From Mytilus edulis (lineage: Eukaryota): 64,000 nucleotides of DNA. Below the pieces are notes generated by a model. That model searched no databases. It was given only the letters and a program-made list of their open reading frames with translations, and was not told the DNA's origin. Positions 3,001 to 20,741 of this stretch are shown piece by piece. The position numbers and the translations under genes were made by a program. Numbering within the stretch: position 1 is the first letter of the stretch; every line of letters begins with the position of its first letter. The DNA lies in the NCBI RefSeq assembly GCF_963676685.1, contig NC_092353.1, positions 51,956,001 through 52,020,000 on the forward strand. Direction: 5' to 3'.

Positions 3001-6000
3001 TTTCGGTCCAGGAGGTTATAGCTAATTAATTTTCAAGAGGGGTTCAATTTGACAAGGAAAGTTATGTATCTTTCTTTGTATCAATTTAAGCAATTGTTTG
3101 AGGCATAATTTTTCAAAACTGTTTACAGATTTGAATAAAAATTAAAAATGATGAATATTTTCTCATTACAAACGTCATACCTTAATGAATAATGTATAGA
3201 AAAAATAAAATGTTATTACTTTGAAGTACTGAAGGTCATTTAAATGAGTACTAAAAAGTCAAACATCTTGACAATATCTTTGTTCTTTAATAAGTGTTGC
3301 TTTTACACATCATATAGAAGAAGGTTAGAAATTCTTTATTGGTCTATTGTTTTTCTGCTTATCCAATTAGAATCAGATCTTTCAATTATTTTTGATGGTG
3401 CGTAAATCTTTTTCTTTGATTGCATGTAATGCAATTTTCTAAGAATTTGCACAATTTAATGGCTGTCAGATTTATTACTCTGAAGGGTATTGACTTTGGC
3501 AAAATGATCTGTATAAGATATCAGTAGAAGTACAAATGCATCTTGACATTGTTTCGTTCCAGCTCGCTGAAATAATTGCCTTTAAGCTACACTGGTAAAT
3601 GGCCATGCACACAATTATTTTGTCCACATGGCACACTAGCTTAAAGCTTTTGTATTCTTTCAGAAAAAGTAAATTAACAAAAATACTGAACTGAACGGAA
3701 AGTCCCTAATCAAATGGCAAAATCAAATGAAAAAACACATCAAACGAATGGACAACAACTTTCATATTCCTGACTTGGTACAGGCAATTTCAATTGTAGA
3801 AAATGGTGGATTGAACCTGGTTTTATAGCACTAAACCTCTCACTTGTATGACAGTTACATCAAATGCAGAACCACAGATACAAAAAAATCTTTTAACATG
3901 GTACACATTGTACAGTTGTGGACGCAGGACCAAGAAACAAAAGACTGCTTGCCATTTATTATAAAGCATGGGGACATGCAATAGTAATACCCACCTGATT
4001 GTTATTTTTATTTAAACTGCATCTACTGTAAATACTTGTACAGGTGGCACACTTTTTCTTAGCAGATTACAAACCCTGCTGGTACCATCTTAAAATCTCA
4101 TCAAAATTGAAAAACAAAAAAAAGACATTCCTCTTCAGTTTTACTGTAGACAGTTATCAGTTATGATTAATTTGATATCAATTTAAGTAGAAGTTTATTA
4201 TTTTTCCAATACTTTTTATCATCAAAATGTAAGATAAGATCTAGAGAAATGGGATGATGGCATTCTATAGTCATCACTTTCTGAAATTGTAATGAAAAGT
4301 ATTGATAATATATCAGTTGGTTATCATTCTAATGTTTTTAAAAAGAAGGAAAATTGAGTTTATCAAAGGTTACAGCTGATCTCTTATTCTTTGTAATTTG
4401 CCAGCATTGAAAATGGGGATATATAATTATAAGGTTGCAACTTTAAATTTAGAAATTTACACAATTTGATTTAAAAACATTTTTTAGGTTAACTATTCTG
4501 TTGCAAAATCACACTTTGTTTTGAAAATAGAATTTCAAAGATAAAATCACAACTGAGCAAATGTTTAAAATGAAAATTCTGTTAAGGTGTTTTACTCCAA
4601 GCAGGCTCTTGTTTTCAATGAGTATAAAAATGCTGCTGTACAATTGAACAGAAAAGTAATATTTAACTTCCCAAATAAATAAACTTAAAAGATCAGTCCT
4701 GAAGGACCTGCAACGCAGTCTTCATGATTAACCACCAGTATTAAATTATGTAATTTTCAGGCCTGCATGAGCAACATTTTGGCTTTAAAGTTGGAATGTG
4801 CAAAACTAAATTTAAAACCAGTTTAATTACTGTGGAACTAGTAAGTGCTTTTCTAAACGCACTTATTACCGATTTTACAAACAGTTAGCAATGTATGAGG
4901 TGTTAAGTTGACTAGTACTTTACAGAATGTATAAATATAAGTTTATAGTGAGTTTGACAGACAAATGGTTATTGCTTTTAAAAATCATCCTGCAGTGTAC
5001 CTGTAGTGTTTGACAGACAAATAATACAGCTTTAAGTCATCATCCCCTTACAGTACCAAGAGCATCTTTGCATTAACTCAAATTAACCAGAAGAACAACT
5101 TAATTCACTCAAGAAGGCAAATCTTGGGAAGCAATTATAAACAATTTGATATGTTGTCTGTTATAAGGAGATATATTATATAATCTATAGGCTAATACTA
5201 AAACTCTGAACAGAAAGTGGAATGTATAGCACATCAATGATAAGAAAATGGAATGGAATTCACCTAAAATTGTGCATGAAGACATACTTATTAATTTTAT
5301 AGCAAAATTTAAATAGATGCTTTCTATGAAATTATTGATATTGTGTTTTATTGATATCAATTATAAAAATATTGAGATGTTTTGTTTTATTGCCAATGAA
5401 ACAGTTATCCATCAAAGACCAAAAGATGAGGATATGAACAACTATAGGTCTGCACATTCTAAAACAAAAAGTAAAACTCCTACTGTTAAGTAAGCTTTAT
5501 ATAAAAGGCTAAGATGATTAAATGGGAAACAATTAATACCAGTAATGTAAACAATAGACTGGATTTGTTTTGAAACAATCATGGCAGACAGCAATCATCA
5601 ACTAAATTTCAGGCTTTGGCACAATGAAAATATGGCCTATGCTGTTCTAGAGTAATATTCCCCTTACTCCATTCCATTTTTTAGTAGCGACCATGAAATA
5701 GAAATTTTACAAAATTTTCCCATCATTGTAATGATGTGCTCTCATAGAGATGGCTGAGCTCCAAGCTATGCGAAATATTGTTTTTAAAGATCTATTTGAA
5801 TGATAGAAACATGTGTAAGTAGGTATTTTATTGCTTTGATGCCTCTAAAAAGCTGACTATGATTTATCTTGATCAATTTTTTTGAATTTGAACAGATGTA
5901 AATTATTCTTTCAGACTTTCTTTCTATAACATTTGGCTTCAGTGTGTTATTAGAAATGTAATAAGATGTATAGTCTAACTTTCATGTAGGAAGTACATAT

Positions 6001-16788: not shown

Positions 16789-17098
16789 TTTTTATGCCCC
16801 ACCTACGATAGTAGAGGGGCATTCCACCTACGATTGTAGAGGGGCATTATGTTTTCTGGTCTGTGCGTCCGTTCGTTCGTTCGTCCGTCTGTCCCGCTTC
16901 AGGTTAAAGTTTTTGGTCAAGGTAGTTTTTGATGAAGTTGAAGTCCAATTGACTTCAAACTTGGTACACATGTTCCCTATGATATGATCTTTCTAATTTT
17001 AATGCCAAATTAGAGATTTTACCTGCATTTCACGGTCCACTGAACATATAAAATGATAGTGCGAGTGGGGCATTCGTGTACTGAGGACACATTCTTGT
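16789..17098 (+). mobile_element. Short HINE-type element (family 2)
   Basis: TTTTTATGCCCC...GGGGCAT palindrome, (CGTT/CCGT)n microsatellite, and 3' end GGGCAT.CGTGTAC...GACACATTCTTG-TT. An interrupted copy lies at 33256-34622. Confidence 0.7.
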
Positions 17099-17186
17099 TT
17101 ATTTTAACTTTCAACCAATTTTTAAAAAAACATTCCTTTTATCAGTATTATTTTATGTATATCATAAAAATTACTCTTTTGAAGTA

Positions 17187-18447
17187 AATCGGCGAAACAT
17201 GTCGACAATAAAAGATGCAGTTTACTTAAGTGTTGTTGTCAATGTAGCGGTATTTGATTTTTTTATATGACAACCCTGCATACCATCTGGTATCCACTTA
17301 AGGGAATTCTACCAGCACAAAACATAAGAGGCGTTGGTTCAGCAGCTCTTTATTTATCTTTTGATATTCCATCTGAACCCCTGCATCCTCGGATCCGCCT
17401 ATACCACACAGCGCCGACCCCACGGCCATCTCTATACCGAGCAAGAACGAAGAATTCCAAGAAGCCAACAAACAACTGATACCAACAATTACTGCCAAGA
17501 AACCACCAAACAAAAGGAAACTTATATGAAGAACAAACAGAGGACTACATTCCTACAACAGGACGGCCAATATATCAAGATTTATATGTACCATCATTCT
17601 GTGCCATCAGAAAATTAAATGTAAAATTATTTTAGTGTGAAACCTTAAAAAGGATCTTTCAAAAGTAAATGGAGATGACACAAAACAGCCAAGATAGATT
17701 TCCAGTACTATTTAAAACCTGCAGGAAATTAAAGTTAAAAGAAGTAAGATACAAAGAACATAAATCCTTCCCACCACCATTTCCAGTTCAACCAACATTG
17801 CCAAGAAATTTTGCGACAGTAAACCACTTTACAGCATTCCCGACGCGATTGGAAGTAGTACCTCTGGCCAAAGGGAACCCAGTCGAAGTGGTAGGGGTGT
17901 GCCCTATAAGTGTTGTCCAAATTAGGAAGAAACTTTATAAAACTGTACACTGACATTGTACTTACATTCATGTTACACAAATTTAATTTCTATTTAAAAA
18001 CACATTTTATTTATACACTTACCATTATAATAGTTTACAACTATTTTAAAGTTAAAGACAATTCGAAAAATTATAGATTAACTCTAAATTTAGTAACTTC
18101 ATTTGCATTGTACTATGTTTGATTCATTTTCTGTTCAACATTACATAATGATATAGAGTATCCCATTGCAACGTCAACAATGGACAATTATGACATCACA
18201 TACATGATACCATTATTTTGTACTTCAGGGGTTCTAATTTTGTATACTTTGTCCTGATGAAGCCGATCTAATCGGCGAAACATGTCGACAATAAAAGATG
18301 CAGTTTACTTAAGTGTTGTTGTCAATGTAGCGGTATTTGATTTTTTTATATGACAACCCTGCATACCATCTGGTATCCACTTAAGGGAACTCTACCAGCA
18401 CAAAACATAAGAGGCGTTGGTTCAGCAGCTCTTTATTTATCTTTTGA
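17187..18447 (+). mobile_element. Non-autonomous hammerhead-ribozyme retroelement (retrozyme-like or internally deleted Penelope-like element)
   Basis: 178-bp direct repeats at 17187-17364 and 18270-18447 with one mismatch. TCTTTTGAAGTA is present at both flanks (17175-17186, 18440-18451). A hammerhead core overlaps the start of the right repeat. No RT motif is seen. Confidence 0.85.
18249..18291 (+). ncRNA. Minimal type-I hammerhead ribozyme
   Basis: UUGUC (stem I) - CUGAUGA - A - GCCGAU cua AUCGGC (stem II) - GAAAC au GUC, cleavage after C18286 - GACAA (stem I partner). All canonical core nucleotides are present. The short palindromic stem III (ACAUGU) is typical of dimer-acting Penelope/retrozyme hammerheads. 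Confidence 0.9.
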
Positions 18448-19272
18448 AGTATATATATATGTAATAAAAAAAGGAGCAAGTCATCATACAAAAAAGCAGA
18501 AAAAATATTAATTATGCATCTTTTTATGACATATCATCACATTATATTTTGAAGCTTACAAATGAGAAAGTGACTTTATTATATAAACCACATGACCATA
18601 TTAAGGTGATGTACAATAAATAGGACATCATATTCAAAGTAATAAATCGGTAACAGGGCCTGCAGCTTTTGATGGTGATAGTTTGTCATTTGTATCCCTA
18701 GAGAAATGACTGTGTCTAAATCGGGCCTAAATTACCCCTACTATTCATGTTCAACACATTTGCAATTTATTTTAAAGGGGAAAAAATATAGTGTTGTTTC
18801 ACTTTTTTTGAAAGTGACAGTTTATCATGCCAAAAAATGGTTTTGTCATAAACTGTGGGAGTCGAGTTGAAAATCTTGTATCTCTAATACAGCAAAGAAA
18901 TTGTGATGAAAGGTCTTTATGTCAGCATTACACTCAGCTTACTTCCTTCAAATTGCTAATCCTGAAAAACAAAACTTGTTTCCTAATTTTAACAATAGTT
19001 GAAATAATCAAGTGAGTTTGATGAATATGAATATGAAACTGTTGTATTGATCGGTTAATTCAACAACAGTAAAATACACCTCAACAAACGAAAAGGAAAA
19101 TTTGTATCATTTGTCATTTGGGTTTTTTTTATAGCGAACTATGGGCAATGATGGGTTTTATTCATTGTTGAAGAATGTACAGTGACCCATTTTTCTGTGT
19201 CATTTGGTATGTGCTAGAAAGTTGTCTCATTGGTAATCAAACCAGTTACATCTTCTTATTTTTATGTTTTAA

Positions 19273-20741
19273 GGTGGTACCTAACACTAAAGGGAGATAA
19301 CTCTGTAATATCAGCTAAACATTTTAAATACGTTGCGTTGTGAAGGCAATATAAAGCTTCTCAATGATCAAAATAAGTGTTTGTCAAACTGCTATATAAC
19401 CAGTGTAATTTTTGTCGAGCCTGCAACTTTTGTTGCAGAAAGCTCGACATAGGAATAGTGATCTGGTGGCGGTGTTAGCTCACTTCTTAAAAGCTATATA
19501 TTTTAGAAGGTGGAAGACCTGGATGCTTCATATTTTGTATATAGATGCCTCATGTTACGAAGTTTCTGTCAGTCACATGTCCATTGTCCCTGACCTCATT
19601 TTCATGGTTCAGTGACCACTTGAAAAAAAAGTTCAGATTTTTTGCAATGTTAAATTCTCTCTTACTGTAAGTAATAGGATAACTATATTTAGTATGTGCG
19701 TACTTTGCAAGGTCCTCATGCCCGTCAGACAGTTTTCAATTGTCCTCAACCTCATTTCATTGATCAGTGAACAAGGTTAAGTTTTGGTGGTCAAGTCCAT
19801 ATCTCGGATACTATAAGCAATAGGTCTAGTATATTCGGTGTATGGAAGGACTGTAAGGTGTACATGTCCAACTGGCAGGTGTCATCTGACCTTGACCTCA
19901 TTTTCATGGTTCAGTAGTTATAGTTAAGTTTTTGTGTTTTGGTCTGTTTTTCTCATACTTTATGCAATAGGTCTACTATATTTGTTGTATGGAATGATTG
20001 TAAGGTGTACATTTCTAGCGGGCTGGTGTCATCTGACCTTGACCTCATTTTCATGGTTCAGTGGTTATAGTTAAGTTTTTGTGTTTTGGTCTGTTTTTCT
20101 CATACTTTATGCAATAGGTTTACTATATTTGTTGTATGGAATGATTGTAAGGTGTACATGTCTAGCGGGCAGATGTCATCTGACCTTGACCTCATTTTCA
20201 TGGTTCAGTGGTCAAAGTTCAGTTTTTGAGTTTTGGCCTTTTTATCTAATACTATATGTCATAGGTCAACTATATTTTGTGTATGGAAATATTTTATGAT
20301 CTATATGTCAGTCGCTCATGTTTTATTTGACCTTGTCCTGGTTTTCAAGGTTCATTGCTCAGTGTTAAGTTTTTGTGTGTTTGTCTATTTTCTTAAACTA
20401 TAAGCAATAGGTCAACTATATTTGTTGTATGGAAGCATTGTTAGCTGTACATGTCTGCCTGGCATATGGTTCAACTGACCTTGACCTCATTTTCATGGTT
20501 CATGTTAAGTCTATGTGACAGTCGTAATAAAGCTTTAGATTTAGGAGTATCAACATAATATCAATGATTAGTAAAGAAGGCTAGACATTTCTGTATGTGC
20601 ACTCTTGTTCTGATAAAATGGTTGGTTAAAAATTTTTGAAATTTTTATATTTTTGTTAAAGGGTCAAAGTAAATACTTTGTCAAAATTTTATCAAAATTA
20701 AACAAGCCAAATTAATTTTAGTGAAAGTGTTAGGTACCACC
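19273..20741. mobile_element. Kolobok-like non-autonomous DNA transposon, interrupted by a Helentron-type insert
   Basis: 16-bp TIR GGTGGTACCTAACACT / AGTGTTAGGTACCACC with TTAA on both sides. Purine termini favour Kolobok over piggyBac. Confidence 0.75.
19410..20608 (+). mobile_element. Helentron-associated (HINE/DINE-1-like) element with internal tandem repeats of about 150 bp
   Basis: Inserted in a T run. 5' palindrome TGTCGAGC...GCTCGACA; repeated units ...CTGACCTTGACCTCATTTTCATGGTTCAGTG; ends GTGCACTCTTG-TT. A second copy lies at 33376-34452. Confidence 0.75.

Follow-up and report, generated by a model that had tools for sequence, protein, structure and literature searches.

The window, a 64,000-nt stretch of Mytilus edulis DNA (NC_092353.1, positions 51,956,001 to 52,020,000), carries an insertion of 1261 nt at 17187–18447, which consists of a 1083-nt unit and a further 178 nt of the same sequence (Table 1). 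The two copies of this 178-nt direct repeat are spaced 1083 nt apart, are 99% identical and differ at a single site, unit position 121 (T at 17307, C at 18390); other, diverged copies of the family have C at this position. The insertion is flanked on both sides by the 12-nt sequence TCTTTTGAAGTA, the first 8 nt of which are identical to unit positions 172–179 of the element itself (as seen at 17358–17365). It is a solo direct insertion without an inverted arm. No ORF in the element exceeds 94 aa, and none of the six ORFs of 70–94 aa gave a Pfam match above threshold. Since it has neither a longer ORF nor a recognizable domain, the element is non-autonomous. The preliminary description had proposed a very recent, ORF-less, hammerhead-bearing retroelement related to Penelope, with a 1083-nt monomer, 178 nt of terminal redundancy containing one mismatch, no encoded reverse transcriptase (RT) and a duplicated flanking 12-mer whose first 8 nt match the element. 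All of this was borne out.

A second haplotype was not found in the assembly, where the right flank is unique and the search with the left flank was swamped by an unrelated high-copy repeat. Two further repeats lie nearby. Just upstream of the insertion, a repeat of ∼280 bp (16824–17103) gave 2524 first-look candidates genome-wide, the listed matches being 90–97% identical; it looks SINE- or MITE-sized, and its start adjoins a twofold tandem of 25 nt at 16799–16848. A tandem array of 147-bp units (19578–20502, at least ∼4.7 copies, ∼82% identity) is located ∼1.1 kb downstream of the element.

Table 1. Features of the insertion, in window coordinates. Unit positions refer to the 1083-nt unit; 'partner' is the autonomous 4146-bp element.
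Feature	Position	Strand	Basis
Target-site duplication, left copy (TCTTTTGAAGTA)	17175..17186	.	Repeat comparison and reading of letters
Upstream pseudo-LTR, unit 1–178, 5'-truncated inside the hammerhead helix II loop	17187..17364	+	Direct repeat
Body segment, unit 179–451, homologous to the autonomous PLE region downstream of the hammerhead	17365..17637	+	Unit 1–451 vs partner 1–457, 74%
Central segment, unit 452–822, without counterpart in the autonomous PLE	17638..18008	+	No significant match, no Pfam domain
Body segment, unit 823–1083, homologous to the autonomous PLE 3' non-coding region, including the hammerhead 5' half	18009..18269	+	Partner 3892–4146, 64%
Complete minimal type-I hammerhead, PLE kind, predicted cleavage C18286/G18287	18249..18291	+	Inspection and genome motif matches
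Downstream pseudo-LTR, unit 1–178	18270..18447	+	Direct repeat
3'-end site A, unit 66–68; 25 other copies stop here, the window copy reads through	18335..18337	+	Copy mapping
3'-end site B, unit ∼168–180; end of the window copy and 24 others	18437..18449	+	Copy mapping
Target-site duplication, right copy; first 8 nt equally assignable to unit 172–179	18440..18451	.	Reading of letters

Judged by its sequence, the motif at the right-hand junction is a complete minimal type-I hammerhead ribozyme of the PLE kind, with cleavage predicted after C18286. By inspection, helix I pairs TTGTC (18249–18253) with GACAA (18287–18291), and the first strand is followed by the core CTGATGA (18254–18260) and an unpaired A (18261). 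Helix II comprises six base pairs between GCCGAT (18262–18267) and ATCGGC (18271–18276) and is closed by a CTA loop. GAAA (18277–18280) leads into the palindrome ACATGT (18280–18285), which replaces a stable helix III, and C17 is at 18286. The traits by which PLE-type hammerheads are recognized, CUGANGA...GAAA, a GUC triplet, helices I and II and a palindromic helix III, are all found here. The left repeat, whose start lies in the helix II loop, retains only the 3' half of the ribozyme (17187–17208) and lacks the catalytic core, so that the right-hand ribozyme is the only complete one in the window copy. The preliminary description was correct in both respects, an intact minimal hammerhead and a single full copy of it.

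A genome search with the 36-nt ribozyme sequence found it unchanged in 22 places and with up to three mismatches in 60, while a reversed control gave none. Rfam reported no hammerhead at the gathering score or at E ≤ 10, its single match being a chance snoRNA (E = 2.9); we put this down to the lack of helix III in the minimal variants. The 26 distinct versions of the motif have 91% of cells paired. Covariation is weak in a family too young for it: three pairs show one double change each, and the same values were reached by 20–37 of 500 shuffles. The identification therefore draws on the motif itself and on its 94% conservation between two element families whose neighbouring sequence is 64–86% identical. 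When co-folded, two 55-nt ribozyme segments formed an extended duplex, which was uninformative on an active dimer. An alternative partner for GACAA, the 3' strand of helix I, is a TTGTC ∼35 nt downstream (window 18287–18325, unit 18–56); a consensus fold of nine copies favours the resulting hairpin, which could compete with the ribozyme fold.

The minimal hammerheads of PLEs have a long helix II, a short helix I, an unpaired base at 9/10.1, a G10.1–C11.1 pair and a palindromic 15.2–16.2 segment with loop 3, which implies action as a dimer (Cervera and de la Peña, 2014; PMC4209133). All these traits are common to the window ribozyme and we see no structural difference. Motifs of such kind cleave poorly in vitro, and PLE hammerheads can be assisted by protein.

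In the 1.37-Gb genome the unit has at least 109 matches of 83–100% identity, on contigs C1 to C14 and a few small contigs. The preliminary description had suggested looking for further copies with differing start points, and such copies abound, with 5' ends that vary freely. Copies from 50 loci were mapped against three units in tandem; once duplicate loci had been discarded, 50 copies with canonical 3' ends remained. Half of them end at unit 60–80 (mostly 66–68) and half at unit 160–185; ends of the first kind are sharp at 66–68, those of the second scatter over 168–183. The 5' ends, in contrast, are spread over the whole unit. Since these vary while the 3' ends are fixed at two sites, the pseudo-LTRs differ in length from copy to copy, with a terminal redundancy of ∼100 to 1040 nt. 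Five independent insertions exceed one unit (1185, 1220, 1261, 1514 and 2124 nt, the third being the window copy); all are collinear and ORF-less. The longest run is 1.96 units, and the family contains no arrays of more than two units, its copies being dispersed. Target duplications of ∼5–12 nt flank several of the other copies.

Twenty-two head-to-head inverted pairs were found, with arms that overlap by 1–14 nt and usually one 3' end of each kind. This pattern suggests that, at a given target, each strand was primed from a different start site of a single RNP. Pairs whose arms end differently (∼67 and ∼172) include L002/L003, L020, L045, L047, L049 and others. A group of 5' ends, at unit 1080, 1083, 1, 5 and 8, the window copy included, clusters in the helix II hairpin; of the five copies that exceed one unit, three begin no more than ∼60 nt away (1027, 1048 and 1). 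Starts between unit 9 and the 3'-end site of the same copy are almost absent, and hence the shortest copies always reach from the hairpin to the start site. We read the cluster as a reverse-transcription stop or a strand switch at the hairpin, in a sample that is small: just five 5' ends lie within 12 nt, and the distribution is already skewed to short copies. In L047 (2542–2794) the inverted junction itself falls in the palindromic helix II hairpin; L049 (2509–2798) is a further example of the clustering.

Conserved sequence blocks lie just 5' of each 3'-end site. A structure recognized by the RT is unsupported: when unit 1–178 was folded as a consensus of nine diverged copies plus the autonomous element, 36 pairs were predicted, none of them with a compensatory change. 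Searching the genome with the central segment (unit 452–822) recovered the family copies and a few partial matches of 75–89%. In a run from a related mussel, the depth of DNA contigs, which does not equal copy number, rises from ∼108 in the 5' part of the stretch compared (17365–18620) to ∼4094 near the 3' end, against 4–15 in the flank; the rise towards the 3' end fits massive 5' truncation. Fourteen runs (X1–X14; three organism codes, 12 studies) contain 66–70% of the sampled unit words, and the family is therefore common to several closely related mussel taxa.

Eleven of the 60 hammerhead places carry a variant with two changes: the unpaired base is different, and C11.1 is U, which preserves a G–U pair. 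In contigs C139, C180 and C13 these variants are spaced 4146 nt apart and delimit the 4146-bp unit of an autonomous EN+ PLE, whose intact ORF of ∼755 aa encodes an RT (FIDD motif), a GIY-YIG domain and, in the RT–EN linker, a C-x4-C-x2-C motif that may point to a Neptune-like element. Its full copy measures 4476 nt including an inverted 5'-truncated arm (L032:3092–7567, C180). The three occurrences are 100% identical, one being interrupted by an insertion of ∼320 bp, and may go back to a single event, on contigs that are duplicates or haplotypes of each other; besides these we found one fragment of 92% identity and more distant PLEs. The autonomous element is thus rare, essentially one insertion, compared with dozens of insertions for the 1083-nt family.

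The two elements have the hammerhead in common (34 of 36 positions) together with ∼710 nt of flanking non-coding sequence, with 74% identity between unit 1–451 and positions 1–457 of the autonomous PLE and 64% between unit 823–1083 and positions 3892–4146. A tblastx comparison revealed non-coding homology alone. Unit 452–822 has no counterpart in the autonomous element and occupies the place of ∼3.4 kb that holds the RT/EN ORF. Copies of the autonomous PLE end at the equivalents of unit 68 and 171, have the same inverted-arm layout and also show a structure of more than one unit. Because the hammerhead, its flanks and both 3'-end positions are common to the two, the 1083-nt element is an ORF-less PLE derivative, and by sequence comparison the family arose within the lineage of the 4146-bp PLE through internal deletion or replacement. 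Of the suggestion that it could be an intermediate between Penelope elements and retrozymes, the relation to Penelope stands; now that an autonomous relative has been found, the element is better described as an internal-deletion derivative of a PLE.

We interpret the stretch in the window as one insertion of such a non-autonomous derivative by PLE-type target-primed reverse transcription, with the enzyme acting in trans, and give this reading a probability of about 0.8. The derivative retains the non-coding ends of an EN+ PLE, namely the hammerhead with ∼450 nt after and ∼260 nt before it, and has ∼370 nt of unrelated sequence where the RT/GIY-YIG gene would be. An AT-rich target would be nicked and cDNA synthesis would begin inside the RNA, at the second of the two fixed start sites (unit ∼172). 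It would then cross the whole unit and may halt at the next hammerhead upstream, inside its GC-rich helix II hairpin, the outcome being 1083 + 178 nt, pseudo-LTRs and a target duplication of 12 nt. In line with proposals for PLEs, the most likely template would be RNA transcribed from a master copy arranged as a partial tandem, although a circular RNA is possible. The enzyme may be supplied in trans by an autonomous PLE, of which the 4146-bp-unit element is the closest found, and the copying was probably done by a PLE in the same genome. However, the identity to this element is only 64–86%, so there may be, or may once have been, a closer partner.

The template held more than one unit, as the preliminary description had supposed, because the five independent copies run collinearly past 1083 nt. 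Template jumping from the 5' end of the RNA to the start sites was considered as another source of such copies; it would yield site-dependent junctions, and none were seen. The earlier proposal of a microhomology-primed insertion holds in part. In the window copy, a fortuitous 8-nt complementarity between target and element may have assisted the start: unit 172–179 could base-pair with the final 8 nt of the nicked bottom-strand primer. As an 8-nt match is unlikely to fall at a set place by chance, microhomology probably aided this event. In the other copies that we examined, target and element are not homologous past the 3' end. Since, in addition, the ends at site B scatter while those at site A are sharp, microhomology is not a general feature.

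The same collinear copies could arise if the element were a large retrozyme, in which dimeric transcripts self-cleave at two hammerheads, the 1083-nt monomer is circularized and a PLE RT rolls round it. All copies that exceed one unit cross the junction collinearly, some copies carry two perfect hammerheads 1083 nt apart (C2:10590292 and 10591374, in the copy at C2:10590272–10591456; C4:3451778 and 3452861), the copy at C5:85972450–85973669 likewise has two hammerheads, and mussels contain abundant hammerhead circRNAs, which derive from retrozymes of 350–390 bp (Cervera and de la Peña, 2020; PMC7229834). We nevertheless consider a circular template of this kind unlikely. The window copy, with one whole ribozyme, cannot release a monomer alone. 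No copy starts at unit 18, the 5' end of the predicted cleavage product; the starts near the ribozyme are those in the helix II hairpin. The autonomous 4.1-kb PLE has its structure of more than one unit without need of a circle, and PLE insertion in vitro is unaffected by hammerhead mutants (Frangieh et al., 2024; PMC11167929).

The RNA data point in the same direction. Three raw RNA runs, mapped on 17365–18620 with the left repeat excluded, gave 17, 35 and 39 reads per 8–13 million, from both strands, which is a weak indication because the library types may under-sample circles. Between 62 and 71% of the RNA reads run into unlike sequence, and none lies in the window's own flank. Starts or ends of reads do not pile up at 18286|18287, where the depth is at most 5. 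A joint that goes back by 1083 nt, present in four reads and one DNA contig, was rejected as evidence for a circle, as it is merely the collinear unit sequence of other genomic copies. The predicted circular fold (−189.5 kcal/mol) is no more stable than those of dinucleotide shuffles (−192.6 ± 7.5 kcal/mol; z = +0.4), whereas retrozyme circles are described as highly self-paired. If the retrozyme reading were true, the element would exceed all other animal retrozymes in size and would connect autonomous PLEs with small retrozymes as a living link, its autonomous parent still being present in the same genome. The suggestion in the preliminary description of an unusually large size is weak, however: published retrozyme consensuses reach 972 bp (Li, Clavereau and Pollet, 2026; bioRxiv 10.64898/2026.07.22.740005), so 1083 nt is not exceptional. 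The 'permuted monomer' of that description is ordinary PLE anatomy, with a free 5' end and a fixed internal 3' end.

It is highly improbable that the window copy is a plain 5'-truncated 3' fragment of an autonomous PLE and the 1083-nt unit illusory: most copies are indeed 5'-truncated with fixed 3' ends, and these ends resemble those of the autonomous PLE, but the five independent ORF-less copies go from hammerhead to hammerhead in exactly 1083 nt, which refutes this explanation, and the autonomous relative has a spacing of 4146 nt and 64–86% identity in the common parts. There is just as little to be said for a TRIM-like miniature LTR retrotransposon whose LTRs measure 178 bp, or for tandem duplication of the local DNA. 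Either would account for two near-identical direct terminal repeats between target duplications but is refuted by the copy-to-copy variation in redundancy from varying 5' ends, and is further contradicted by the frequent head-to-head arms and the dispersal of copies with differing target duplications over at least 12 chromosomes.

PLE-type insertion agrees with what is known of these elements elsewhere. According to Craig et al. (2021; PMC8557442), they form pseudo-LTRs through partial tandem repetition, have a 'tail' at one end and lie next to an inverted copy that is truncated at its 5' end. For a PLE of Anolis, reverse transcription starts from two internal RNA sites without target homology, the enzyme extends both DNA strands and the template is probably a multi-copy transcript (PMC11167929). 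The mussel family has the same anatomy of variable pseudo-LTRs, head-to-head inverted copies and two alternative 3' ends. The ORF for RT and GIY-YIG that marks an autonomous PLE is absent from the 1083-nt element and present in its 4146-bp relative. With the canonical EN+ PLEs (Penelope/Poseidon, Neptune) the family has in common pseudo-LTRs, inverted arms, two 3' ends and a hammerhead in the pLTR, and likewise AT-rich targets and variable target duplications. It differs in that canonical units are 3–4 kb long and carry an ORF, as against an ORF-less 1083 nt here, and in that their tail is 30–40 nt whereas the two 3' ends of the mussel family lie ∼105 nt apart.

Non-LTR retrozymes of metazoans (PMC7229834; bioRxiv 10.64898/2026.07.22.740005) are likewise non-autonomous elements with a hammerhead and a low GC content (35%); they occur alongside PLEs, have a proposed origin from PLE pLTRs and are present in mussels. 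The 1083-nt element is, as they are, a non-autonomous unit with a type-I hammerhead, but it does not form the head-to-tail arrays of short units (∼150–450 bp, up to 972 bp) that are typical of them. Mussel retrozymes consist of 350–390-bp tandem units with abundant circRNA and hammerheads that lack most loop–loop contacts, while mussel PLEs carry atypical minimal hammerhead variants (PMC7229834). Retrozymes occur in long arrays (up to 62–300 units) and yield abundant circRNA, whereas in the 1083-nt family the copies are dispersed, 5'-truncated and at most two units long, RNA is scarce, the ribozyme is of the minimal PLE type whose helix III is palindromic, and folding brings no gain in stability over shuffles. 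Across retrozymes, consensus lengths span 51–972 bp, and the origin from PLE pLTRs has been argued from Xenopus, with invertebrates left unexamined (bioRxiv 10.64898/2026.07.22.740005). A closer parallel is offered by the non-autonomous derivatives of Chlamys PLEs in Chlamydomonas, e.g. MRC1 (PMC8557442), which are also ORF-less, carry pLTRs, form multi-copy head-to-tail insertions and have 3' ends that resemble those of the autonomous family, as here; the PLE clade and the host differ.

The 1083-nt family is thus a dispersed, ORF-less PLE derivative with a PLE-type ribozyme, and this kind of element, its layout and the proposed parent–parasite relation have already been published. What the mussel contributes is a clean invertebrate example of ORF-less hammerhead elements that come from the non-coding ends of PLEs, an idea argued mainly for vertebrates. 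Both partners are present in one genome and have the ribozyme and both reverse-transcription start positions in common. The genomic copies mirror the behaviour of the Anolis PLE in vitro, with two internal start sites and extension of both strands, and the pair of elements would be a convenient substrate with which to define the RNA features recognized by the PLE enzyme.
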